A DNA stretch of 63,369 bases, filler included, from Octopus bimaculoides (GCF_001194135.2; 8 parts of 7 records of this genome joined end to end with filler, not necessarily neighbours in it), one strand, 5' to 3'; counted from the first letter of the whole stretch, positions 22,280 through 37,735 are shown. The notes: generated by a model not told the origin, from the letters alone. Numbers and translations: made by a program.

Positions 22280-22412
22280 NNNNNNNNNNNNNNNNNNNNN
22301 NNNNNNNNNNNNNNNNNNNNNNNTTAATTAATTAANNNNNNNNNNNNNNNNNNNNNNNNNNNNNNNNNNNNNNNNNNNNATTTGGATAAAAGTAGTAAAT
22401 GTTGTTATTCAC

Positions 22413-22465
22413 CCACAATATTTGACTTTGAATGATCCAGTCGAATTTGAAAACTCATGCTCCAC
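22413..22465 (-). CDS. Next exon (53 nt, phase 0-2): VEHEFSNSTGSFKVKYC(G)
   Basis: Acceptor aactattgcag, donor gtgaat. Phase-compatible and continues a plausible extracellular sequence with an NST sequon. Confidence 0.6.
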
Positions 22466-22545
22466 CTGCAATAGTTGGATATGTATATATATAAACATAT
22501 CTATGTGTGTGTGTGTGTGTGTGTCTGTGTGTGAGTATGTATGCA

Positions 22546-22801
22546 TTTCAGTTGTCACTAATAGTGTCTTAGAGTGCAGGGTAACATCTACATTGTTAGA
22601 AACAAAAGCGAAAGAGTCTTATAACCGCCAAAAGTACATGTGTATGCACTGACAGGGGAGATAACCGCTGGCGGTTATGATGATTATTTCCCCTGTCAGT
22701 GCATAGAAATGTGCGTTTTGCGGCTATAAGCGTTGTTGGCTCTTGTTTCAGTCACGTGGTTGCTACTCTACACCCTCAGTCACTACTAGTGACAATTGAA
22801 A
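22546..22801. mobile_element. Foldback / MITE palindrome
   Basis: Nested inverted arms, including a perfect 17-bp pair tatgcactgacagggga / tcccctgtcagtgcata. Confidence 0.8.
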
Positions 22802-23766
22802 TTTTCATTTCCGGTTTGATATTGCTAATAGGAATCGCAGAATTGTACATGTATGATATACATATTTATATATGACGATACATCTCTACAATATGCACAC
22901 CGTTTACATTGTCCTAGTACGCTATTGGACATCCACATGATGTGATCTGAGATTCCAAGAATTGAAATTATTATAAAAATGTGGGACAAAACGAATAATT
23001 TCTGATTTCTTGTTATTTTCTCCTAACCTGTTTTCATGTGTTACATTCAAAATATTGCAATATAATTACTGCTTACATAAAGGCAATACCAAATACTGAA
23101 GACGGACAGCTACAGATCGATACGATTACATACGAATATTCCTGCATGTGTTTTAAGCATTGCAGATATGGCAGAATATCTATATAAACGATTCACGCAT
23201 CTTAACATATTTATTTAAACGGCGTTGTAAAGAGGCACACAAAGAAATATGTTAAAAAACGTTTCAAAACAGTTCATGAAAAGGACAAACTCCTTTCAGT
23301 AATTTTAGATACTATTGTAGAATTAAAAACTACCTGAAAGGAAAGATTACCCAAGCTGTGAACAACTATAAATTTAATTCTGACGGAGCTTTTAACGATT
23401 GTCATTGTGTATTTTGAAAAACAATTACAAATATTGGTGCATATTGGCTAAATGTAAGTGTCTCTTTCGTCCGGATCGTGACTACAATCATTGTATACAA
23501 TGGACCTTATACTATATATGATCACAATATCTGAGACAATAAAAATCTGCAAGACTTCCTTAGGACATAAAGGATGATGAATAAAATAAAATGCTTTCTT
23601 TCACAACCTTATTATCAAGGTCAAAATTTGCTCTAAATTAAAAAGAGAACATACATACAAGTATACATACATACAAACGTACATGCATATACATATACGT
23701 GCGCGCGTGTTTGGAGAGAGAGAAAGGCGGAGGGAGAGATGGGAGAGTAAATAGACTGGTACACAC

Positions 23767-23855
23767 AGCTCTAGATATGTTTTCAGCATGGTTTTCCTTG
23801 AAGTTCTTAAAAGTTGAATTGTAAATCAGATGAAATACAAAGGAATTGGTCCAGC
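23767..23855 (-). CDS. Post-LU exon (89 nt, phase 1-0): WTNSFVFHLIYNSTFKNFKENHAENISRA; possible SEA-like start
   Basis: Strong acceptor tttatttgcttccacag, donor gtgtgt. Open in the required phase. The SEA resemblance is by eye only. Confidence 0.7.
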
Positions 23856-24019
23856 CTGTGGAAGCAAATAAAAATAGAACAGAAACATTACGATTACAAC
23901 TGAGACACATGTGACATTTTCTCATATATGAAGTATTATACACTGTTATTATAAACAATTTGTCTGTAGTAAATCGAGAGTAGTTAATGTAATTGAATTA
24001 GAGAATATACAAGTCTTAC

Positions 24020-24203
24020 CGATAAAGTCATTCTTGTTACATTGGTTTCCGCTGCAGCAAGCAACACACGAAGTGCCATTGGCCCATTTATCGCACGTAA
24101 AAGTATTGTTTCTCATAGCTTCAAAGCAGTTTCTGTATGTGCTGCAAGATCTTTCAAACTTCAGTGTGACGCCATTCATTGATAGTTTATATTGGCATAC
24201 AGG
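24020..24203 (-). CDS. Ly6/uPAR domain exon B (184 nt, phase 0-1): PVCQYKLSMNGVTLKFERSCSTYRNCFEAMRNNTFTCDKWANGTSCVACCSGNQCNKNDFI
   Basis: Acceptor tcattattacag, donor gtaaga. Ends in the CCxxxxCN hallmark of LU/three-finger domains. Confidence 0.92.
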
Positions 24204-24781
24204 CTGTAATAATGAATACAAAAATAATAGACTACTACGACAACGACTACTATTGCAACTATTGTTGCTAGCAACAAGAGCAACGGGAGCGTGTTTAGCA
24301 AGTAAAAAAATTGCACTCTGCATCAAAAATGTATTCGCAGCAACAAATGAAATCGAAACAAAATGACAAGGTTTGGGAAGATGACTGAAAATAATCCTAT
24401 TCTACGTCCAGCAATACTTTTCTGAGAAACAAATAGGGAAGAGGCCACTCCTATGCTCGTGGTTCTGATATCTGGACCAGCTGACATCTTGTGACCTTAA
24501 ACAAGACTTTTCTCCTCCAGTCTACTCTGTTGAAAATAAGTACCAGCTTAATGCTGGTCATCTCTCTTTCTTTCTTCCCCCTCCCTTCAATTGCTACATC
24601 CTTGATATTCCATTGATTCCAAGACGAGAAGACCGAGTGTGTGTACATCCTTGCATGAGATTATATAGGCACGTAAAATAATTAATGAAAGCATGCTACA
24701 AGCTCTCTTGTAATACTGTTTTGCTATTGACGGCTATGGATGTATTTTAACAGAAAGGAATAAAGTAACATTTCACTTTAC

Positions 24782-24873
24782 CTCTGCTACTGCACAGTTT
24801 GTCACTTCTGAATCAGTGCACGTCATCCCTGAACAAGTCTGACACCGCAAGTTCCGTTGAAATAAGGAATAAC
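24782..24873 (-). CDS. Ly6/uPAR (three-finger) domain exon A (92 nt, phase 1-0): YSLFQRNLRCQTCSGMTCTDSEVTNCAVAE
   Basis: Acceptor aatttgcag, donor gtaaag. LxCxxC start typical of LU domains. Phase matches both neighbours. Confidence 0.88.
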
Positions 24874-25394
24874 CTGCAAATTATCAGATAAAATCTTATC
24901 TGTCTACCTGTATTTAGACATACATACATACATACATACATACACACACCCACACACATATATACNNNNNNNNNNNNNNNNNNNNNNNNNNNNNNNNNNN
25001 NNNNNNNNNNNNNNNNNNNNNNNNNNNNNNNNNNNNNNNNNNNNNNNNNNNNNNNNNNNNNNNNNNNNNNNNNNNNNNNNNNNNNNNNNNNNNNNNNNNN
25101 NNNNNNNNNNNNNNNNNNNNNNNNNNNNNNNNNNNNNNNNNNNNNNNNNNNNNNNNNNNNNNNNNNNNNNNNNNNNNNNNNNNNNNNNNNNNNNNNNNNN
25201 NNNNNNNNNNNNNNNNNNNNNNNNNNNNNNNNNNNNNNNNNNNNNNNNNNNNNNNNNNNNNNNNNNNNNNNNNNNNNNNNNNNNNNNNNNNNNNNNNNNN
25301 NNNNNNNNNNNNNNNNNNNNNNNNNNNNNNNNNNNNNNNNNNNNNNNNNNNNNNNNNNNNNNNNNNNNNNNNNNNNNNNNNNNNNNNNNNNNNN

Positions 25395-25428
<34 letters not shown>

Positions 25429-25432
<4 letters not shown>

Positions 25433-25889
25433 ATAATTAAGGGAACAGCAACAATTGTTTACCACATACCGAAGTTCACAAATAGCAGCTAAAGTGCTGA
25501 AACTCCAAAAGATTGCAATACTTGTAACTCATAAAGGCAATACAAGAAGAAAAAATAACGAAACTCACCAGTCTTAGTTAATCATACGCGCGTTTCTTGC
25601 TTAGAAAAGTAAAACCTTTTTATTTCCTCATCATTATGACATTCCAGTTTGCAAATTCGACGATGCTGGCAATTGTGCTTGCACGATAAGGAAATGAAAA
25701 GTTTTTACTTTTCTAAGCCAGAAACGCGTCTATGATTAACTAAGAATGGTTAATTTCGTTATTTTTTATTCTTGTTTTGCCTTTATGAGTTACAAGTATT
25801 GCTATCTGTTGGGGTCTCAGCACTTTAGCTGCTATTTCTGAACTTCGGTATGTGGTGAAGCAATTGTTGCTGATCCCCTAACTATGTTT
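25429..25889. mobile_element. Foldback element with about 200-bp arms
   Basis: Perfect 21-bp (aaatagcagctaaagtgctga) and 24-bp (caatacttgtaactcataaaggca) inverted matches inside long arms. Confidence 0.85.
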
Positions 25890-26024
25890 ACAAATGTATA
25901 AGAACTTTTAAATAAGTTCTTCACCGATAATGGTGTTTACATACCGAAGGGCTTGGTAAAAATTATTAATTATTAATTTATTAATAAATTAATTAATTGA
26001 TAATCCTTTACAGTTTTATTTGTA

Positions 26025-26058
<34 letters not shown>

Positions 26059-26961
26059 ATATATATATGTATATGTATATAGATATAATTATGTTTGTGT
26101 GTGTCTTTGTATCTATTTGTGTCCCACCACCACTTGACACTCGATGTAGATGTGTTGACACGCTCGTAACTTAGTGATTCGACAAAGCGACCGTTAGAAT
26201 AAATATCAGGCCTAGAAAGTGAAGTAGATTAATTCGACAGAAACTTCAATGTAGTCTTCCAGTATGATCTCAGTCTAATACCTGAAACAAGTGAAAGATA
26301 AAATATATACTGGATCTATTTCACTTCTTTCTAATTTGTCAGTTGGTCAAATAGTTAATCTAGAAACCAATCGATTGCTTGATTTATCATTCGTTTAATC
26401 AATCAGTGAATTATGTCTGCCAAGGACCTTTCGTTGTCCATTGCATCCTCTTCAATAACACACCATCTCTATTACAGGTTAGTTTGAGGTTTCTTGGTCT
26501 GTCTCAAATTTTTAGGTTATACATCTATATATTTATGGCATAGGATTGAGAAGGTTTGTGAGAGGAAGAGGGGATGAGAAGCAGAATATATGTGCGGTTA
26601 TGCGTGTATATCTGTGTGTGTGTGAGCGTTCGTAGGTGCGAATGTGAGTTTGTACGGTACGATTGATTCTTTGAGTGCATTACAGAGAATATGCGAGTGT
26701 GTGTCTGTGAGAGCCTGTGTGTGCGCGTGTGTGTGTACGTGTGTGAGTGTAGATGTGCATGCGCTTTCATGTATGTGTACCATGTGGAATTTGTGAAAGG
26801 TGTCAATAATAGAGTGGTGTGGATGGTGTTTCGTTATATCTTTATCTTTTGGTCCTGTTTCCTAAGACATTATAGTTTGAGCAGCAGAGTGTAATCCGGG
26901 GTTTTGCTATTGGTAAAAGTAAAATCAAAGAAACAACAAAGGCAAGGAAGATTTTACTAAC

Positions 26962-27116
26962 TTTTACATTGCGAATATTCCATTATAGGAATTACTTTGC
27001 TTTGGTTATTTCCCGAATCTGTATGACACTCGCCCAGGACTTTCACGGTTCTGTTATATGTTCTGTTCACGTAATTTACTAAGGCCGGCAGGTGACATCC
27101 ACACATCATGTGGTCA
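26962..27116 (-). CDS. LRR C-terminal cap exon (155 nt, phase 2-1): DHMMCGCHLPALVNYVNRTYNRTVKVLGECHTDSGNNQSKVIPIMEYSQCK
   Basis: Acceptor tttataattacag, donor gttagt. The CxC...C...C four-cysteine spacing is typical of LRRCT. Open in the phase predicted by the neighbouring exons. Confidence 0.85.
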
Positions 27117-27295
27117 CTGTAATTATAAAGAGAACTTTAACTGAATGCTCTTCAGATCAAACTCCTGCTTGATTTGACAAGAAACAAGGATTATATAACT
27201 TCAGCAAGTGTATAAAAATGGTAACATTCATGTTCTTTTATTTTCCAGGAGCAAACAACATCAATAACGTGAAAAGCTTTCTAGTAGAAAGTTCT

Positions 27296-27327
<32 letters not shown>

Positions 27328-27664
27328 CTTATAGCTTACATTTTGAATGATAAAATCCCTTTAGTTAAGAGAAAATTCATAACCATTTGAAGTGACTTCA
27401 TGATATCGTGGGTTAGAGAGCGATCTATAACATAAGACGGCCGAAGGAGAAAAAAGATCTGAGCATGGCATGGATTGACAACTGGAAGACTTTTGACAGT
27501 AGAATACGCTATCCCCACACAAGCACGCACACACATACGCAGCTCCAACATGCACACACAAGCACATATACAGCCCTATATTCCGATGTCTCTGACACAC
27601 AAAATGTTTCACATTCTTCTCTTACTATCTATTTCTTTCTTCCTCTCTCTTAAATATATATGTA

Positions 27665-27906
27665 TATTGGGTTGGTGCATAATTATTGCGACTTTTTTCA
27701 ACAAGTTTTATTAAACAAAAACAATAACAGCATGTAACAAAAACATGTTTAAATGATTATTCCGGTGCATTTTCACCATCTACCTCAATTGTTGCTACCC
27801 CTTTGCTTGGCAGACGGTCAGACCGTCAGTTAAAGATGTTTATGTTAAATATTGTTATTGCTTTTATTGAGTAAAATTCGTTGATAAAAGCCGCAATAAT
27901 TATGCA

Positions 27907-27917
<11 letters not shown>
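27665..27917. mobile_element. mariner-derived MITE (about 250 bp)
   Basis: TIRs tattgggttggtgcataattattgcg / cgcaataattatgcacctaccctata with TA ends. Confidence 0.8.
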
Positions 27918-27940
<23 letters not shown>

Positions 27941-28197
27941 NNNNNNNNNNNNNNNNNNNNNNNNNNNNNNNNNNNNNNNNNNNNNNNNNNNNNNNNNNNN
28001 NNNNNNNNNNNNNNNNNNNNNNNNNNNNNNNNNNNNNNNNNNNNNNNNNNNNNNNNNNNNNNNNNNNNNNNNNNNNNNNNNNNNNNNNNNNNNNNNNNNN
28101 NNNNNNNNNNNNNNNNNNNNNNNNNNNNNNNNNNNNNNNNNNNNNNNNNNNNNNNNNNNNNNNNNNNNNNNNNNNNNNNNNNNNNNNNNATATGTAT

Positions 28198-28234
<37 letters not shown>

Positions 28235-28239
28235 TAATA

Positions 28240-28540
28240 ATAATAGTAACACAAATCAGAAGAGTTGTCTTCCAAGGGGAGTTTCTGTCCCTACTGATCT
28301 TTGTATTAAGCACGATACCACTACCACTAATTCTGAGGAAAGCAAGGGCTGGTTATGTATGTCTTCAAGAGCCGCCAACAAAAAGGCAACCACTTGTCAC
28401 TCATGGATGACCTCAAACTTTATGGTAAAGATGAATCCCAAGTCAGTTCCTTCGTTGATACGGTGTATACGTTCAGTGTTGATATCACAAATTATATCAC
28501 TTGTACAGTATAGCTATTGGTTTGGATCATCCGTGAACTA
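28240..28540 (+). mobile_element. R4/Dong-like RT fragment
   Basis: RRVVFQGEFLSLLIFVL..IPL..ILRK...GY and MDDLKLYGK. Starts after (TAA)n. Confidence 0.7.
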
Positions 28541-28905
28541 AGCCCCTCATATTCTCTCTTCCCCTCTCTCTCCCCTCTCTCTCTCTCCCTATATATATAT
28601 ATAGATAGATAGATAGAGAGAGGGAGTGAGAGGGAAGGAGGGGGTGCACTGAACCAACACCTTTATATATATTATATGTATTTGTGAACATGGATAAAAT
28701 GAAATTAAACCAATCCACATGCTATATGAACACAGTCTGCCATGCAAAAGAAAATAATAAATTTGGCAAACTAAAATTTAAACCATTTCATTGATATTTG
28801 TTGTTTAGACTATTTAACAAACTATCATGAAGTTAATGACATCTGTCTATGACATTGTACAAAGTGTTTTAATTTCCCCATAAACAAAGAGCATGTTATA
28901 CATAC

Positions 28906-28977
28906 ATCTTCTCTATACTGGGAAAGAATAAGAAAGCGCCATCATCATATTTTTTGATCTGGTTGTTGCTCAAATAT
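28906..28977 (-). CDS. LRR exon 3 (72 nt, phase 2-2): YLSNNQIKKYDDGAFLFFPSIEKI
   Basis: Acceptor tctgtttctttcag, donor gtatgt, 72 nt, LRR consensus. Confidence 0.9.
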
Positions 28978-31698
28978 CTGAAAGAAACAGACAAATATTA
29001 TTATTAGTTAAAATACGTAGATACCAGCAATTCGGTTTCTCCTGGTTGGTACTGTCTAAATTTCTTTTTAATCAACACTAATGGAATTCTCGTGTTCACA
29101 GTACAATTGTTTATTTGAATATATGACCCCTGGCGGTGTAGTTTGTACAAGAATAAATTCGATCAATCTATCTTAAATATGCTGAGTGAAGAGAAAATCG
29201 TGTGTGATACCTCAACAGCAAAAGCTGGAAGATGATAAGTTATATGAATAACAAACAAAACGAAACTTTGTTACCTGTACAATATGGATTTTAGATAACA
29301 CATTCAAGTATGCTAGAAATACAATTTTCGGTATATGCTCCAATGACATTATAAAACTTTCTACTGTAGGCATAAGGCCTTAAATTTGGGGAAGAGAACC
29401 AGTCGATTACATCAATCCCAATGCTCAAATGGCATTTATTTTATGGGTCTCGAAATGATAAAGAAACGCACTGTCGACATCGGTAGTATTTGATCTCAGA
29501 ATGTAAAGAGCCGGACGAAAATTACAATAAAATTGCAAGGATAAGAAATTGTGAATTATTATAACACTGAATATCTTAAGAGTATTTTACAACTTTAAGA
29601 ACCATATCCGAAGTATACGTCACAATTATGTTCATCCGTAACATTTAGTAGGAAATATCATTCTCTGAATCAGTTCTTAGACACTTTGATACAGTTGTAT
29701 GGGAAATAAAATTTTAATGTATATGATTTATAGTCCAGAAAATTGGAAAACAGACTATGTAATAAAGGAAAGTACCATAAAGTACGCTAGTTATAACATA
29801 ATACATATATTCACTGAGGACCAAATTGTTAAAAAAACATTGCCAAATTAGATACTAGTCATACAATATGCAGAACTGCTAGTGGTCAAGTTCTTTGTTG
29901 CCCTGACGACAAAAATATATTATATGGAAAGAACTAACGTCTACAACTTTTCCATTAACAGAAATTCTTTGAAATACCATCATGTGATAATGAAACTTCT
30001 GCTGTGGCAGTTGTGATATAAAATATAGTCTATTCCCAACACAAGGTTGTGACTGCGTCACAAACCTCTTAAAATAGGTTTAAAATTTTGGCACAAGGCT
30101 AGCAATTTCGGGGAAGAGAGTATGTCATTTACATCGACCTCAGTGCTCAACTGGTACATTTTTATAAACCTTCAAAGAATGAAAAGCAATTTCGACCTCA
30201 GCCAAATTGGAACTTAGAACTGACGAAATGCTGCTAAGCATTTGACCGGCGTGCTAAAGATTATACCAGTTCCCTTTTCTTTAAATTTTTTTATATTGAA
30301 ATTCTATAGACATTGTAACTTTTATATCACAGATTCGAAATTTCGTCTCCTTTGTTGTAGCGCAGGTTCGACCAGCATACCTTCGCCGTGTCCTGGTTCG
30401 GCCGACTGACTCCGACCTGGACGTTTACTGGCTGTATCTGTCCGCTATTTATACGTATTAGACTAGCCTACTTCTGGTCTNNNNNNNNNNTTTTTTCAAA
30501 CACAGAATTATTTTTTGCATTTCTACGACTTTTCTTTTAACATTTTCCATTTCTATAACTTTTCCTTTACTAGTTGACATTTCATCTCGAGTCCTTTCAA
30601 GGAGGACCTATTTAGTATTCTCAATCACAAAATGGCTTGCGGTTTCTTTGTCCATTTTAACATTCCTAGCAACTGGTTTCTTTTCAACTTCAATAGATAT
30701 CTGCTCACGTTTGAAACCTTCTTGTCTGACTCGCTTTAAATGTATCGTAGTAAATATTTTGTAGCACACAGAATTTTCCAAATCCTTCACACGCGCCCAG
30801 TGTTTATATCCTATCAGCATTTTCTCGCTCCACACAGAACCATTTTTCTTTTTCTTTTTGTATTGTCGTAAATACTTTGTTACACAGAATTACCAAATCC
30901 TTCAAACGGACTTGTATTATCAGCAAATTTTTCGTTCCATACAGAGTCATTTTTTCAAAATGCCCGCAGGTTGTACCAGTCTATCATTATTACTGGTAGC
31001 GCTACTACACAAAGCAACCTGACATATAATTCCTGCCAACAGACTTATGCTATTATTTCTTTGTGTGTAGTTCTGTGTCAGTCCAAATCCTTTCCACACA
31101 GAATCATTTTCAACTTCAAAATGCTTTAACGGACTTATATTTATTCTACTTCGGAAATATTTTCACTGCAATTTGTTTTCTTTAAAATCATTTTCCACTG
31201 TATGTGTAGTTCTGTGTTCATTCGAATCCTACTTCGGCGACATTTTTCGCTACGATTTTTCCTTCAAAATCATTTTTCACTCTGTATATTACATTTTCAC
31301 TGCACTTTTTCTTCAAAATCATTGTTCACTGTGCTTATTCTCATAGAATTTTACCCTTACTTTCATTTTTGTATCTACTCAAGAAGGCTGAGAAAAACGT
31401 ATGGTTACAAAAAGGGATCACATCAGAACGCTTCTTAAGGAGTCTTGAACCAAAACATTTAAGAATCAAATACGAACAATCTACGTTTATTTGAATTGTG
31501 AAAGAGAGAAATTTACATTAGTACATACATACACTTATACACACGATATCAAACACGGGCACACAATTTTTCACACTCATATTCATATTCACATACACAC
31601 TCTCGTATCTAAAGAGAGAGTTACGAATATAGGAAGACGTTAGATATCGAGAAATAAGATGTCAATGAAAAATTTTCAGCAAGGCTGATCCAACATAC

Positions 31699-31770
31699 AA
31701 ACGCGTTAAACTGGGTAGGTTTTGAAAGGTTCCTTTTTCAATGTTCGTGATATTGTTAGAATCCAAACGT
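31699..31770 (-). CDS. LRR exon 2 (72 nt, phase 2-2): RLDSNNITNIEKGTFQNLPSLTRL
   Basis: Acceptor ttacag, donor gtatgt, 72 nt, canonical LRR. The junction with exon 1 gives TTA (Leu). Confidence 0.92.
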
Positions 31771-31924
31771 CTGTAACATATAAGTGGGTTGATAAGAACA
31801 GATTTGTGATAAAATGTTAAATAGCAGATATAAAAATTTGATGAAAGAGGCGTAGAAAAGGATGCAGAAACATTAAAAGACGAGGAGGAGGAGGAAGATG
31901 AGAAAGATAAAGGAAACGAAGAAA

Positions 31925-31959
<35 letters not shown>

Positions 31960-32364
31960 GATATCAATGAATCCGATGGTGAAGGTGTTATTTACGATGC
32001 TATTGATAATGTCATTTTTGACGACATTGATGAGCATGGTGACGATAATCACGAGTGATGATGATGCAGATATTAGTAACTGATGATGATGGATTATTGA
32101 ACATGACTGTTAGTAAAAGTGATAGTAACTTTTGAAGATAAGAAGCACGGTGATGATGATGCTTATAGTAATGATAATGTTATGTCAAGGATAATGATTT
32201 TGACGATGATGATGATGACGAGGAGCAGGAAGTAGAAGGGGAAGAAATATATAATGATAAAGAGAAAATGACGATGTTAGACGTAAAGATATGTATTAAG
32301 TATAGAAGATGCATCAATATAAGAAGAAAATATAGACGATGTGTCTGGAGGGAATGTAAAGGGT

Positions 32365-32850
32365 TAAACTCCAGTTTCAGATCCGGGCAAAAAATAGAAA
32401 GAATAATGTAATATGTGTAAAACAACGTGTAGTAAAAGAATATGAAGACAAAATGCGCGTTGCCGAATGGCGGTGAGGAAGAGAGGAAACGGAAAATTCA
32501 TATTGGGAATGTTCCGAGTCCTCTCACCATCACCCCATCTATCGTCGCAATTTTTTCTTTATATTCGCTTACGACACATTATTTTACACCTATTACACTA
32601 TTTCTATTTCAAATTTTGTGACGGCTTTCTCGGAAAATTCACATGATCAGACTCACAGGATCCGAAAACTCAAATCGAGGAGTGGTGAGAGGACTCGGAA
32701 TATTCTTGATGTGAATTTTCCGAGTCCTTTCCTCCACCTTTCTCAGCGTGCATGTTTTAATCAGATTCGATTAGTATACGTTGTTTTACATATATTACAC
32801 TAATTTCCTTTTTTTTTTTGCCCGCAGGGTCTGAAACGGCAGTTTCACCA
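32365..32850. mobile_element. Degenerate foldback element
   Basis: ttccgagtcctctcacca / tggtgagaggactcggaa (18 bp perfect), tgtaatatgtgtaaaacaacgt / acgttgttttacatatattaca, and similar termini. Confidence 0.7.
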
Positions 32851-35707
32851 TGAAAAGATAATGGAAGAAGACAGGGAAATAGAAAAAAGAGTGAAAGAAA
32901 ATGAATTAGGAAAAAATAGAAAGTCAAAACAGCATATTGAAGAAGTCAAAGAGAAAATGACGACAAAAGAAAACGGAGAAGAGAAGAAAGCAGGAAGTCA
33001 CGAATGAAAACCAATAATGAGGAAAGAAGAATTTATTAGAGGAAAATTAATTTGAAGAAGAATAGAAATTGAAGACGAAGTGTAGTATTAAGGAAGAATA
33101 TATGGGAGAATAAGCAGAACAGTGACATGGATATCAATAAGGATGTGACGAACATGATAGCGATGATGGTGGGAAAGAAGTTATACAAAGTGTATAGAAG
33201 AGGAAGTAGAAGACGAAGAATTATAAAAGACGGCGAAAAGAGGAAAAGGAAAGAAGGGGAGAACTGGAAAGAGGAGAGGAAGGAAAGCAGAAAGAGAAGT
33301 ATAAGACAAAATAAAGATGAAAGAGAAAATACAAAAAGACGAGGAGGAGGAAGCAGCAGACGGGTCAGAAAGATAAAGAAGAAAGCAAAGAAGCAAAGAA
33401 TAGGTGATAGAAGACAAAGAAGGTGGAGTACAGATAGTACGAAACAAAAGAGAAGATAGAAAATTTGAAAGAGAATTACAAAAATAGGAAATAAAAATAG
33501 ATGTTGTTAGAATAATAGAAGATGAAGTTGAAGAAGAAAAAGTGCAGTAAAAGAAGTGTAGCAATAAGTAAAAGACGAAAAGGGAGAAGAAAAAGGATAT
33601 AAGAATTATTAATATAACCAGATATATGCAGAAAGAACCAACTATAATTCATACATACAATTGAACACTTACATATACANNNNNNNNNNNNNNNNNNNNN
33701 NNNNNNNNNNNNNNNNNNNNNNNNNNNNNNNNNNNNNNNNNNNNNNNNNNNNNNNNNNNNNNNNNNNNNNNNNNNNNNNNNNNNNNNNNNNNNNNNNNNN
33801 NNNNNNNNNNNNNNNNNNNNNNNNNNNNNNNNNNNNNNNNNNNNNNNNNNNNNNNNNNNNNNNNNNNNNNNNNNNNNNNNNNNNNNNNNNNNNNNNNNNN
33901 NNNNNNNNNNNNNNNNNNNNNNNNNNNNNNNNNNNNNNNNNNNNNNNNNNNNNNNNNNNNNNNNNNNNNNNNNNNNNNNNNNNNNNNNNNNNNNNNNNNN
34001 NNNNNNNNNNNNNNNNNNNNNNNNNNNNNNNNNNNNNNNNNNNNNNNNNNNNNNNNNNNNNNNNNNNNNNNNNNNNNNNNNNNNNNNNNNNNNNNNNNNN
34101 NNNNNNNNNNNNNNNNNNNNNNNNNNNNNNNNNNNNNNNNNNNNNNNNNNNNNNNNNNNNNNNNNNNNNNNNNNNNNNNNNNNNNNNNNNNNNNNNNNNN
34201 NNNNNNNNNNNNNNNNNNNNNNNNNNNNNNNNNNNNNNNNNNNNNNNNNNNNNNNNNNNNNNNNNNNNNNNNNNNNNNNNNNNNNNNNNNNNNNNNNNNN
34301 NNNNNNNNNNNNNNNNNNNNNNNNNNNNNNNNNNNNNNNNNNNNNNNNNNNNNNNNNNNNNNNNNNNNNNNNNNNNNNNNNNNNNNNNNNNNNNNNNNNN
34401 NNNNNNNNNNNNNNNNNNNNNNNNNNNNNNNNNNNNNNNNNNNNNNNNNNNNNNNNNNNNNNNNNNNNNNNNNNNNNNNNNNNNNNNNNNNNNNNNNNNN
34501 NNNNNNNNNNNNNNNNNNNNNNNNNNNNNNNNNNNNNNNNNNNNNNNNNNNNNNNNNNNNNNNNNNNNNNNNNNNNNNNNNNNNNNNAGAAACATAATCT
34601 GTTGGTTTCGATCATTTCTCTGTATGTTGTTTTTTTGTATTGATACTTCTCCTTTCATAAACATCTGCAATTTTGTACTGGCAAACATCTCCTCACATTT
34701 AATCACATCAAATGTTTCCATATATTTGGATGACTAATATTCAGTGTGTTTTTCAGCACGCTGTGGTACATTTTAAAACTATGTGTAATACGAGCAATCC
34801 CCTTCATACATCGCTCTTAAACACTCCATATAGATAATGGAATTGGAGCTTCACGACGTCGCCTCCTCTTCCCCCTTCCTTTAGGTGATCCTAAATAATT
34901 ATTTTCAAAATAGGATACAATTGACTGTGATATATCATCATCATCTACAAGTTGTTCATATCAGTCCTATCAAACTGCAAATGGAGGTATTTCCGAGAAG
35001 GCACAGTCGTTTAAATTCTGAACTTCACTAGCGAGTTAAGGAAGTTAAGATAAATAATGTGTTAAAGAATGTATAAAATTAGAAATATGAATAATGTAGT
35101 GAGAAATACACATATAGAATCAAATGATATTTGGTAATCCACAGCTAGTCAATAGTAAATCATTTGCAGGTTGTATTGCACACACATGACAAACTCGCAC
35201 ACACACACATGCATTCACAAACATATATGCATACATATACGCAAAAATGCACAAAATAGTATCCATACATTGTCATAAACACACCAACACGCATTTGTGT
35301 TGACACNNNNNNNNNNNNNNNNNNNNNNNNNNNNNNNNNNNNNNNNNNNNNNNNNNNNNNNNNNNNNNNNNNNNNNNNNNNNNNNNNNNNNNNNNNNNNN
35401 NNNNNNNNNNNNNNNNNNNNNNNNNNNNNNNNNNNNNNNNNNNNNNNNNNNNNNNNNNNNNNNNNNNNNNNNNNNNNNNNNNNNNNNNNNNNNNNNNNNN
35501 NNNNNNNNNNNNNNNNNNNNNNNNNNNNNNNNNNNNNNNNNNNNNNNNNNNNNNNNNNNNNNNNNNNNNNNNNNNNNNNNNNNNNNNNNNNNNNNNNNNN
35601 NNNNNNNNNNNNNNNNNNNNNNNNNNNNNNNNNNNNNNNNNNGAAGAATGAGAATTGAATATCTAGAATATATCGGCAGCGAAAAATCATCTACAGATCC
35701 AACTTAC

Positions 35708-35779
35708 AATTCTGTTAAATTAGGAACATCTTGGAAAGTTTCATCTTTAATGTTTGTAATATTGTTATTATTCAGATAT
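35708..35779 (-). CDS. LRR exon 1 of LRR-LU mosaic gene (72 nt, phase 2-2): YLNNNNITNIKDETFQDVPNLTEL
   Basis: Acceptor ttatgtttcag and donor gtaagt. Exactly 72 nt (one 24-aa LRR). Fits xLxxNxIxxIxxxxFxxLxxLxxL. Confidence 0.9.
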
Positions 35780-37735
35780 CTGAAACATAAAAGTGAGGTG
35801 ATGAATAATATTGAACACATTTGTTATAACATTAAATATTATGGCTGATAAGTGAAATAAGTGCAGATTCTATGAATATAGTAAGTTTAGTGCGTGGCAA
35901 CTGCAGTAGGGCACCTAATGAAACAGTAAAAATCTAGTGGCAGCAACATTAACCAATGCCACCACCAAGAGGTAAGGAAGAAGAAATTAGATGAAGGGAC
36001 AGAAGTAAAAGACAAGGGAGAACAAATTTATGAGGATCACGATGAAGAGGCAGAAAAGGAGGCAATGGAGGTGATGATGAGTGTGATGAAATTGATGATA
36101 ATGAGGTTCATGATAATGTATGATGATGCTCATCATCATGGTAATTAATGACTAACATGATGAGCAAGGAGTAGAAGAATTAAAAAAAGAAAGAAATTGA
36201 AGAGAGCAGGATAGGTAAACGACAAAGACGACAATGGTGAATAAAGTATAGCAGAAATAGTTGGCAAAAAGAAAATATTGCTGATGACGTCGAAGAGAAG
36301 AGAAAAGCAGAGTCGGGAGTGGAAGAGGCAGAATAGTAAGAAAAAAACTTCAAAATGATAAGGGTAATTAGTGAACGAAAATAATTAGTAAAATATGTAA
36401 AACTAATGTAGACGGTCTGGAGTCAGAAAGATATAAGAAAAAGAAAACGAAAAACACAAAATAGAATTATGTAGCTGATGAATATGTAGAAGGCGATAAA
36501 AGATAAAAGAAGGAGGAGGGAAAGGAAACAAGAAAAATAAGAAAATAAATGTAAGCGAAGACAAAGCCAGAGATGTGAAGGAAGTGATGTAATATGAAGA
36601 CGACGATAAAGCAGATGAAGAAGACTATAATGAGAGAGAATAAAACAATAAACTAAATGACGATAAAAAGAAAAACCAAATNNNNNNNNNNNNNNNNNNN
36701 NNNNNNNNNNNNNNNNNNNNNNNNNTTAATTAATTAANNNNNNNNNNNNNNNNNNNNNNNNNNNNNNNNNNNNNNNNNNNNATATATATATATATATACG
36801 TATATATATATATATACACACTCACATATACAGACACAGATACACCCGGAACGTTGTCCATATCTTCAGTAAAATCGACAACCTATCGTTAAGAACATGC
36901 ATTAGTGAAATCGTTAGGAATTCTTTACAAGTAAGTTTAGATGGTCTTCGTAGCTGGACAGATTTGATTACTGAGATAACTTGTACAGTTTAAAAACCAG
37001 GATGACTGATAGAATGAACATGACATTGTCATTTACAGTTGGCCTCTTCTTTGTTACTGTTGCTACTTTGACTGCACTTAGTACTGATGGACGAGAACTA
37101 TGATCAAAGCACTCCTGCCATGACCATCCAAATTCGGTAATTCATTTATTTTTGTTTGTTCTTTATAAATCTCTGTTCTTTTGTTTGCGTTTATCTTTTT
37201 CATCAAAGATAGACGGATATGATTTGAAAATATAGTTCTTTTCTACTCTAGGCACAAGGCGCGAAATTTGGGGGTTTGGGGTCAGTAGATTAGATTGACG
37301 TCAGTACGCAACTGGTACTTAATTTATCAACACTGTAAGGATGAAAAGCAAAGTCGACCTCGGCGGAATTAGAACTCAGAACGTGAAGAGAGACAAAATA
37401 CTGCTAACCATTTAGCCCGGAGTGCTAAAATTTCTGCAAACTCACTGGCTTGATTTGAAAATATAATTGAAGGCCCGATACATGCATATATAAACACATG
37501 CACATACATACTCACACACATGTATAGGTGTGTGTGAATATGTATATATACATTTGCGCGCGTACAAGAAACACGCAAACGCGAGCAAAAACACACGTAT
37601 ATATATCATATAAATGAAGATTGCCTGCAGTCACAAGACATATTATAGAAACCTGCATAATATGTGTCCATTACTGGCGTTTTTTTATGTGTGCAATGTT
37701 CATTAAATGACATGCGTGTGCGTGTATATATATAT

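Follow-up and report, generated by a model that had tools for sequence, protein, structure and literature searches.

A probable adhesion GPCR paralog of Octopus bimaculoides with a three-finger domain between its LRR block and a SEA-like module

We analysed a window of 63,369 nucleotides (filler included), made of 8 parts of 7 records of the Octopus bimaculoides genome (GCF_001194135.2) joined end to end. The piece between positions 22,413 and 35,779 very probably belongs to an adhesion GPCR gene, an expressed and unannotated paralog in an octopus-expanded family; it holds eight, probably nine, internal exons for the extracellular N-terminal region, and the GAIN/GPS/7TM part lies beyond the edge of the piece. 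Members of this family are auto-named ADGRG6/GPR126-like or ADGRA3-like, and Ritschard et al. 2019 (PMC6408891) refer to it as “group 3”. An earlier note, made from the sequence alone, had spliced 263 codons, could not assign their architecture to a named family and suggested a lineage-specific receptor or ligand. Neither a family without a name nor a stand-alone protein of 263 codons is supported: the architecture forms the N-terminus of an octopus adhesion GPCR expansion that is published and represented in databases, the relatives continue to GAIN/GPS/7TM, and RNA from the locus runs past the supposed stop. The exons present in the window are the following:

E1, 35708..35779, minus strand: 72-nt LRR exon (YLNNNNITNIKDETFQDVPNLTEL), phase 2/2, with AG/GT borders
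E2, 31699..31770, minus strand: 72-nt LRR exon (RLDSNNITNIEKGTFQNLPSLTRL), seen in 4 runs, at 246-317 of the RNA contig
E3, 28906..28977, minus strand: last 72-nt LRR exon (YLSNNQIKKYDDGAFLFFPSIEKI), at contig positions 318-389 by arithmetic
E4, 26962..27116, minus strand: LRRCT cap exon (D[LQGNN]DMMCGCHLPALVNY...ECHTD...YSQCK), window length 155 nt, RNA length 170 nt
E5, 24782..24873, minus strand: first half of the LU/three-finger domain (YSLFQRNLRCQTCSGMTCTDSEVTNCAVAE)
E6, 24020..24203, minus strand: second half of the LU domain (PVCQYK...SCVACCSGNQCNKNDFI)
E7, 23767..23855, minus strand: encodes strand 1 and helix 1 of the SEA-like module (GWTNSFVFHLIYNSTFKNFKENHAENISRA); its donor, GTGTGT, is weak
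E8, 22413..22465, minus strand: continues the SEA-like module as its second exon (VEHEFSNSTGSFKVKYCG; the last codon is split), with the donor GG|GTGAAT

These eight exons are real and transcribed. Their AG...GT borders are canonical throughout, the phases run 2-2-2-2-1-0-1-0, and paralog proteins align to each of them, which bears out the exon set and the compatible phases proposed earlier. Joined as they stand in the window, they give 263 sense codons with 11 N-X-S/T sequons (the same number on recounting) and a 12-Cys block ending CCSGNQCN. The stop-free frame of 263 codons is thus correct for this join, but the join lacks an LRR exon and five codons and finishes at a false stop. RNA contigs of the Logan assembly (k=31; organism probably Octopus bimaculoides) match the exons of the locus with 0-1 mismatch, compared to a divergence of 11-30% to the paralogs, and connect E2-E3-E4-E5-E6-E7-E8 at the same 0-1 mismatch, although in a multigene family such an assembly may contain chimeric paths where paralogs share 31-mers. 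The downstream loose RNA end of E2 matches the start of E3, and the E2 to E3 loose end, together with that from E3 to E4 (...TAGAGAAGAT|TGACC), sets both borders of E3. The junction between E5 and E6 (24782 to 24203) occurs in 3 runs and that between E6 and E7 in 2 runs, while E7 and E8 are both contained in a 588-nt X25 contig. The RNA cleanly skips the introns containing the gaps at 24966-25394, 27941-28189 and 30481-30490, so that these gaps hide no exon.

Could the LRR and LU exons come from different neighbouring genes and form an assembly chimera? Public annotations often divide such loci into an LRR gene and a LU gene, and Logan contigs are k-mer assemblies. The junction from 26962 to 24873, which the earlier note had set as the critical test, is nevertheless found independently in three runs from three studies, with the loose RNA end at 24873 consisting of the last 30 nt of E4 (end 26962) in 3 runs. 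In addition, a 737/677-nt contig spans E1...E6 with 0-1 mismatch, and single database proteins run from LRR to 7TM, which makes a chimera extremely improbable.

One gene, then, carries both parts, and its LRR block is longer than the three repeats counted before. One LRR repeat corresponds to one 72-nt exon, and the spliced peptide matches the Pfam profiles LRR_8 (E=6.3e-31) and LRR_4 (5.7e-12), so the LRR call itself is sound. In the 737-nt contig, E1 occupies positions 102-173 (0 mismatches in 3 runs, partial in a fourth) and E2 positions 246-317, and the interval 174-245 is another 72-nt LRR exon (RLNNNNVQI[I/M]....IHNIAKLMTL), contrary to the direct join of E1 to E2 made earlier. Neither this exon nor its flanking 30-nt loose ends were found in the readable window. 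Between E1 and E2 there are two assembly gaps, one of which probably hides it:

span 33680..35642, minus strand: assembly gaps 33680-34587 and 35307-35642

Upstream, RNA joins E1 to an exon ending ...FKNLPSLRRL that is outside the piece. Further LRR exons thus lie upstream of the piece, and the RNA contig contains at least five full LRR exons and part of a sixth.

The repeats are followed by the LRRCT-type cap encoded by E4. The pattern MMCGC-x22-C-x19-C (CxC-x22-C-x19-C in the cysteines) is present, in line with the LRRCT call of the earlier note, and is nearly invariant in the family; the paralog P0018 carries the UniProt name “LRRCT domain-containing protein”, and a Pfam scan returned no LRRCT match. 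The start of E4, on the other hand, has to be revised. In RNA (contig 390-559) the exon has 15 extra nt, TTCAAGGTAATAACG (LQGNN), after TGACC and reads IEKIDLQGNNDMMCGC. The same 15 nt are present in three paralog loci, which are all the paralogs compared, and in RNA of three studies; their absence from the window copy is an in-frame deletion.

At the other end of the piece, the reading frame does not stop after KVKYCG. The 588-nt X25 contig runs through E7 and E8 (22413-22465) into TTTAGAGAAATTTACAGAAG... (...KVKYCG-LEKFTEVVT), so that the RNA splices past the TGA and continues for at least 482 nt that are not in the piece. E8 ends at 22413 (GG|GTGAAT), the bases 22412-22409 (G+TGA) belong to the intron and the TGA at 22411-22409 is unused. 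An intron also interrupts the paralog locus L002 at this position. Alternative splice partners were observed in RNA contigs at the E7 donor: X25 has an out-of-frame junction from E7 to a GAIN-A-like exon, and in an X30 contig E7 continues in frame into GATGCCTACCAGAATGAAGGAGATGTAAAGA, 28 of whose 30 positions agree with the TM1 exon of paralogs (DVYQNEGDVKNKELLSIISNIGCGISF); this link to TM1 is one de Bruijn contig from one run, with 30 nt visible.

The 15 nt missing from E4, the in-frame TGA after KVKYCG, the weak E7 donor and the out-of-frame junction in X25 might together indicate a pseudogene in decay within a tandem array. We consider this very unlikely: the deletion is in frame and the RNA of the locus retains the 15 nt, the TGA falls within a removed intron, no invariant Cys or motif residue of the family is lost, and at least three runs show the exons transcribed and correctly spliced. 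It is also unlikely, though somewhat less so, that the locus mainly produces an LRR-LRRCT-LU(-SEA) protein standing alone, either secreted or GPI-anchored. In favor of such a product, the databases contain several short LRR-LU models, e.g. P0013 and P0015; P0002 (“decorin-like isoform X2”) ends by read-through of the donor equivalent to that of E7 (...SRAVVPKHRDIYYLPYSPYYK); and behind the weak donor (GTGTGT) of the window copy the read-through frame is open for a while. Against it, the RNA splices E7 to E8 and proceeds beyond the supposed TGA, one contig gets to a TM1-like exon, and the short database models are visibly truncated, as they start at the internal MMCGC with LRR exons upstream and GPS/7TM “genes” immediately downstream.

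A receptor is what the full-length relatives point to. The LRR-LRRCT-LU-SEA block is common to about 45 Octopus/Argonauta relatives; 19 Octopus paralogs are 51-87% identical, and searching 1.84e9 proteins exhaustively with the LU profile HMM gave only 27 representative clusters. The earlier aside that SEA domains often precede GAIN in adhesion GPCRs proved to be the answer, as full-length relatives have LRR-LRRCT-LU-SEA-HRM-GAIN/GPS-7TM within a single protein. In P0032, LRR, LU (272-361), GPS (791-834), 7tm_2 (842-1070) and Death follow one another in one protein, and P0034, P0036 and P0031 show the domain series in the same way. GPS (1e-13) and 7tm_2 (up to 1e-41) are matched in these four relatives, the relatives' sequences show HL|T GPS motifs and a Stachel of the TSFALLM type, and HRM is weak (E=7e-4 in P0026). 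The source names of relatives are GPR126-like, ADGRG6 and ADGRA3. The paralog locus L002 has the same exon plan, with a “gene” containing GPS and 7tm_2 1.5 kb downstream, and in L003 three models cover LRR, LU-SEA and GAIN_ADGRA3+GPS+7tm_2.

The LU domain contains 12 invariant Cys and the C-terminal CCSGNQCN. The window's domain has no Pfam match, and no Pfam LU model reaches its gathering score in the relatives, where the matches are sub-threshold: Activin_recp (7e-4), Toxin_cobra-type (3.6e-3), UPAR_LY6 (0.015), Toxin_TOLIP and UPAR_LY6_2, all of which belong to the three-finger clan. The family profile A5 matches LYPD1 (6zss, E=1.3e-5), LYPD6 (6gbi, 2.1e-3) and candoxin (9.8e-3) in the PDB; the matches listed are all three-finger proteins (toxins, SLURP1, Lynx1, activin/TGF-beta receptors) except BRG1 at E=1.4. 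Each of the 12 Cys has an aligned counterpart in LYPD1, the C-terminal CCxxxxCN included, and the earlier assignment to the Ly6/uPAR type is upheld. An AF2 model from a 14-sequence alignment was unusable (pLDDT 38). The octopus domain shares with LYPD1/LYPD6 the Cys framework and significant profile matches, but known LU proteins are small, single or tandem, and GPI-anchored or secreted, whereas in this family the domain sits inside a large receptor.

Only the first half of the SEA-like module is covered by the window. An AF2 model of residues 284-382 of the paralog P0001 (pLDDT 82, pTM 0.73) forms a beta-alpha-beta-beta-alpha sandwich, with the elements E3-12, H22-36, E42-47, E53-63 and H68-81; SEA domains are alpha/beta sandwiches (beta-alpha-beta-beta-alpha-beta) of some 100 residues. 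The Pfam SEA profile is matched over positions 4-100/106 in the divergent relative P0037 (E=3.7e-4, 21 bits versus a cut-off of 26.4) and, also below the cut-off, in the divergent relative P0034 (7.2e-3); the Octopus members have no Pfam SEA match. Foldseek with the model returned generic ferredoxin-like folds from the PDB, none at E<0.01, and profile searches of the PDB found no SEA. The by-eye SEA call gains a fold model and a near-full-profile match in relatives, while its sequence matches stay below threshold, and a SEA identity of the module is plausible.

Two known adhesion GPCR types resemble this architecture. Vertebrate ADGRA (GPR124/GPR125) is built as LRR-LRRCT-Ig-HRM-GAIN-7TM. Compared by architecture, the octopus proteins share with it an N-terminal LRR block with LRRCT-type cap followed by HRM, GAIN and 7TM; Pfam GAIN_ADGRA3 matches the downstream part of one paralog, and NCBI names one relative ADGRA3. 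The difference is that LU and the SEA-like module stand between LRRCT and HRM in place of Ig, for which no relative has a match. ADGRG6/GPR126 is built as CUB-PTX-SEA-HRM-GAIN-7TM and has in common the order of SEA (below threshold here), HRM, GAIN and 7TM; several relatives are auto-named ADGRG6-like by NCBI. The octopus N-terminus, in contrast, is LRR-LRRCT-LU, and Pfam scans of nine long relatives gave no CUB or pentraxin.

The closest system is the octopus-specific adhesion GPCR expansion, for which positive selection and expression in axial nerve cord, suckers and skin have been reported (PMC6408891). Species group, exon plan, tandem arrangement, LRR N-terminus, GPS with 7tm_2, an occasional Death domain (P0032) and paralogs of 51-87% identity all agree with it; the window copy differs in that no protein in the databases searched is more than 87% identical to it. 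The text and InterPro table of that study list LRR, GPS, 7TM and Death, and no Ly6/uPAR-type or SEA domain (PMC6408891). A Ly6/uPAR-type domain is likewise not mentioned in a 2026 aGPCR review, and a three-finger (Ly6/uPAR-like) domain appears to be previously undescribed in adhesion GPCRs.

The full receptor would consist of a signal peptide, LRRNT, several one-exon LRRs, LRRCT, the 12-Cys LU domain, the SEA-like module, HRM, GAIN/GPS and 7TM. By established adhesion GPCR biology, the LRR-LU head would bind a surface or matrix partner and the receptor would cleave itself within the GAIN domain, at the conserved HL|T site. Pull on, or displacement of, the N-terminal fragment would then expose the tethered agonist (TSFALLM...), which would activate the 7TM domain and G proteins.

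An orphan-looking mosaic peptide is thus placed as another unannotated copy of an octopus-expanded adhesion GPCR family, with a LU and a SEA-like module that standard Pfam/InterPro scans miss and that the literature searched does not mention for adhesion GPCRs. Public gene models are systematically split into LRR, LU-SEA and GAIN-7TM pieces under names such as decorin-like, SLIT and NTRK-like or LYPD1-like. Because these models are broken and misnamed, the expansion has likely been miscounted and its domain tables are likely wrong. Tentatively, LU may be an integral, conserved module of a mollusc/coleoid aGPCR lineage, placed between the LRR cap and the SEA-HRM-GAIN stalk, and octopod tandem expansion with stalk-dropping alternative splicing may have produced diversified contact receptors in the arm nervous system and suckers. 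If so, the LU finger would be the ligand-binding tip or a built-in cis-modulator of the receptor, and a domain type new to the described aGPCR repertoire.

The exons under study lie in the part of the window at 22380-36681 (the piece, from NC_069009.1), which is AT-rich and contains many microsatellites and five N-gaps. All eight exons proposed in the earlier note (E1 to E8) are present there on the minus strand, bordered by AG and GT. Joined in the proposed phases they encode 263 sense codons, with 11 N-X-S/T sequons and 17 Cys. Pfam recognises only the leucine-rich repeats (LRRs) of the joined peptide (LRR_8, E=6e-31) and leaves both the Cys-rich block and the tail without a match.

Exons of the piece, with their positions in the 737-nt RNA contig of sequencing run X25
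35779-35708, minus strand: E1, 72 nt, AG and GT flanks; contig 102-173
31770-31699, minus strand: E2, 72 nt, AG and GT flanks; contig 246-317
28977-28906, minus strand: E3, 72 nt, AG and GT flanks
27116-26962, minus strand: E4, 155 nt in the window, AG and GT flanks; contig 390-559
24873-24782, minus strand: E5, 92 nt, AG and GT flanks; contig 560-651
24203-24020, minus strand: E6, 184 nt, AG and GT flanks; contig 652-737
23855-23767, minus strand: E7, 89 nt, AG and GT flanks
22465-22409 as first read, TGA included, minus strand: E8, 57 nt; RNA donor at 22413/22412

The piece was also scanned for Rfam families, tRNAs and tandem repeats, with no relevant result. Microsatellites (TG/CA, TATG-type) are dense in the introns (22470-22560, 23640-23760, 24905-24965, 26525-26810 and 27465-27650); they resemble human DNA and on translation give spurious Cys/His/Thr-rich ORFs.

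The locus is found in DNA sequencing runs, and its exons in RNA runs, of organism A, the coded source of the data. This organism is probably O. bimaculoides, since a paralog-derived RNA loose end (contig sequence running past the matched exon) reads FMDWNNTFE, identical to the O. bimaculoides protein P0002, and the paralog loci L001-L005 belong to assembly GCA_001194135.2 of O. bimaculoides. RNA contigs were compared with the window one exon at a time. The main contig (737 nt, X25) shows 0-1 mismatch to the window exons; the same path is found in X37 (677 nt), and parts of it in X30 and X26. The E2-E3 junction, where the loose end is the start of E3, and the E3-E4 junction are both seen directly. 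For E4-E5, three runs show at 24873 a loose end made up of the 3'-terminal 30 nt of E4, up to 26962. The E5-E6 junction is found in three runs, E6-E7 in two, and E7-E8 in a 588-nt contig of X25. With the join from 26962 to 24873 present in RNA, the LRR and three-finger (Ly6/uPAR, LU) parts therefore belong to one gene, as the earlier note had proposed. Within E7 (window 23790-23819) the 588-nt contig differs by one base, CAT to CGT (His to Arg), presumably a polymorphism.

The original count of three LRRs is too low, because the RNA carries further LRR exons. Between E1 and E2 it has 72 additional nt, reading ACGTCTGAATAATAATAATGTGCAGATAAT...CATACACAACATTGCAAAACTAATGACTTT and encoding RLNNNNVQI..IHNIAKLMTL, the ends of which occur nowhere in the readable window; this exon is probably located in the gap at 35307-35642 or that at 33680-34587. 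Upstream of E1, the main contig holds another 101 nt of LRR exons (...FKNLPSLRRL), beyond the piece. Three of the gaps fall in introns and are cleanly skipped by the RNA.

E4 measures 170 nt in RNA, with TTCAAGGTAATAACG after TGACC, giving IEKIDLQGNNDMMCGC. The window lacks these 15 nt (LQGNN) at the exon start (27111-27116, between 27111 and 27112), while the RNA of the locus has them in three studies, as do three paralog loci. An upstream alternative acceptor, which would explain the absent DLxxN, is excluded by the paralog alignment, in which the 15 nt missing from the window leave a clean gap within the exon. Either the window carries an in-frame allele or the assembly is in error here; the DNA runs are each below 1x coverage, with contigs of repeated sequence only.

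The TGA after KVKYCG, taken at first as the end of the reading frame, proved to be intronic: the RNA uses the donor GG/GTGAAT at 22413/22412, which also excludes a frameshifted pseudogene ending after YCG. Beyond E8 the RNA continues for 482 nt (LEKFTEVVT...), and the gene extends off the piece. An intron at this position is also present in a paralog. At 23767 the E7 donor is also spliced to other partners. In an X30 contig, E7 is followed in frame by sequence that agrees at 28/30 positions with the TM1 exon of the paralogs (DVYQNEGDVKNKELLSIISNIGCGISF); on this basis the gene is predicted to include a 7TM part, and at least one isoform to omit the rest of the SEA-like module, the HRM and the GAIN domain. 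A 92-nt X25 contig shows E7 spliced, apparently out of frame, to an exon that is GAIN-A-like and, read in its own frame, gives …NVLEFSTKL.

We accept the three-finger call on the grounds of the Cys framework (12 invariant Cys, CCxxxxCN at the end) and of family-profile matches to three-finger proteins. An Octopus-only profile aligned all Cys with LYPD1 (6zss) at E=0.07; with divergent relatives added, LYPD1 scored 1.3e-5, LYPD6 2.1e-3 and candoxin 9.8e-3, followed by SLURP1, Lynx1, mambalgin and activin/TGF-beta receptors. Among the matches listed for this widened profile, BRG1 (E=1.4) is the single one that is not a three-finger protein. Pfam matches of the relatives' LU domains were below threshold, all to three-finger-type families. 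The AF2 model of the domain (pLDDT 38) was too low for a fold search. The SEA-like call, of which the window carries just the first half of the module, is reasonable, with SEA membership tentative: the complete module of a paralog was modelled with confidence (pLDDT 82) as a beta-alpha-beta-beta-alpha sandwich, Foldseek retrieved generic ferredoxin-like folds only, and Pfam SEA matched two divergent relatives only, along almost its entire length and below cut-off (3.7e-4 and 7e-3).

At 51-87% identity, the window peptide matches 19 proteins of O. bimaculoides, O. sinensis and O. vulgaris, with automatic names such as 'SLIT and NTRK-like 4', 'decorin-like', 'LYPD1-like' and 'adhesion GPCR G6-like'; another relative is from Argonauta hians. 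After YCG, the Octopus relatives continue with the remainder of the alpha/beta module, an HRM-like Cys-rich domain and GAIN-like sequence. The relative P0032 combines in a single chain LRRs, LU (272-361), GPS (791-834), 7tm_2 (842-1070) and a Death domain, and P0034, P0036 and P0031 are built alike; the long relatives are named GPR126-like, ADGRG6 or ADGRA3 in their sources. Their GPS sites read HL/T, followed by TSFALLM-type tethered-agonist sequences. Some relatives, namely the O. sinensis / O. vulgaris models P0006 and P0009, have the SEA-like module twice; the additional copy (GWTKSF.FRLILK…AENIS..MEHE…F.VEYPG) is located after the HRM in P0009.

When 1.84e9 representative proteins were searched exhaustively with an HMM of the LU domain, just 27 clusters emerged, and an LU-alignment profile search of a word-indexed protein database gave 6 Octopus proteins and nothing else. 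More distant LU matches occur in scallop and whelk. In the scallop protein P0038 (Mizuhopecten yessoensis, 285 aa), a SEA-like segment comes after an LU domain of this kind, so the pairing of LU and SEA may be older than cephalopods.

The paralog loci share the exon plan of the window, and their introns remain alignable at 67-77%, consistent with tandem duplication in the recent past. None of L001-L005 is the window's own gene (best match 89% over one exon, otherwise at most about 85%). The window paralog appears unannotated, as its product is at most 87% identical to any protein in the databases. The annotation cuts one gene of this family into two or three models: L002 (9452-28105) is given as P0005 and, 1.5 kb downstream of it, a separate 'gene' with GPS/7tm_2, whereas L003 (1-30740) is given as three models (LRR, LU-SEA, and GAIN_ADGRA3 with GPS and 7tm_2). 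Many NCBI models of the family begin at the internal Met of MMCGC, and that of P0005 includes a retained intron (…SRVVSRHTFSFVVSLCLSLSLTLTISLTHIQTRTH…).

An octopus-specific expansion of adhesion GPCRs, 'group 3', has been described (Ritschard et al. 2019, PMC6408891), with GPS and 7TM domains; 5/22 of its sequences have LRRs, and a single one has a Death domain. The InterPro table of that paper has no Ly6/uPAR, toxin or SEA entry, and the accessible part of a 2026 adhesion GPCR review makes no reference to Ly6, uPAR or three-finger. Judging from these sources, the family is already known and sequenced and its LU domain seems to have gone unnoticed. By analogy with adhesion GPCR biology, the LRR-LRRCT-LU head would bind a partner and the GAIN domain would cleave itself at HL/T; force or ligand-induced displacement could then expose the tethered agonist and activate the 7TM domain. 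The mosaic gene was essentially observed correctly, but its architecture, first considered unassignable, belongs to a known family. What is new in the window gene is another member of this family and a modestly novel domain annotation.
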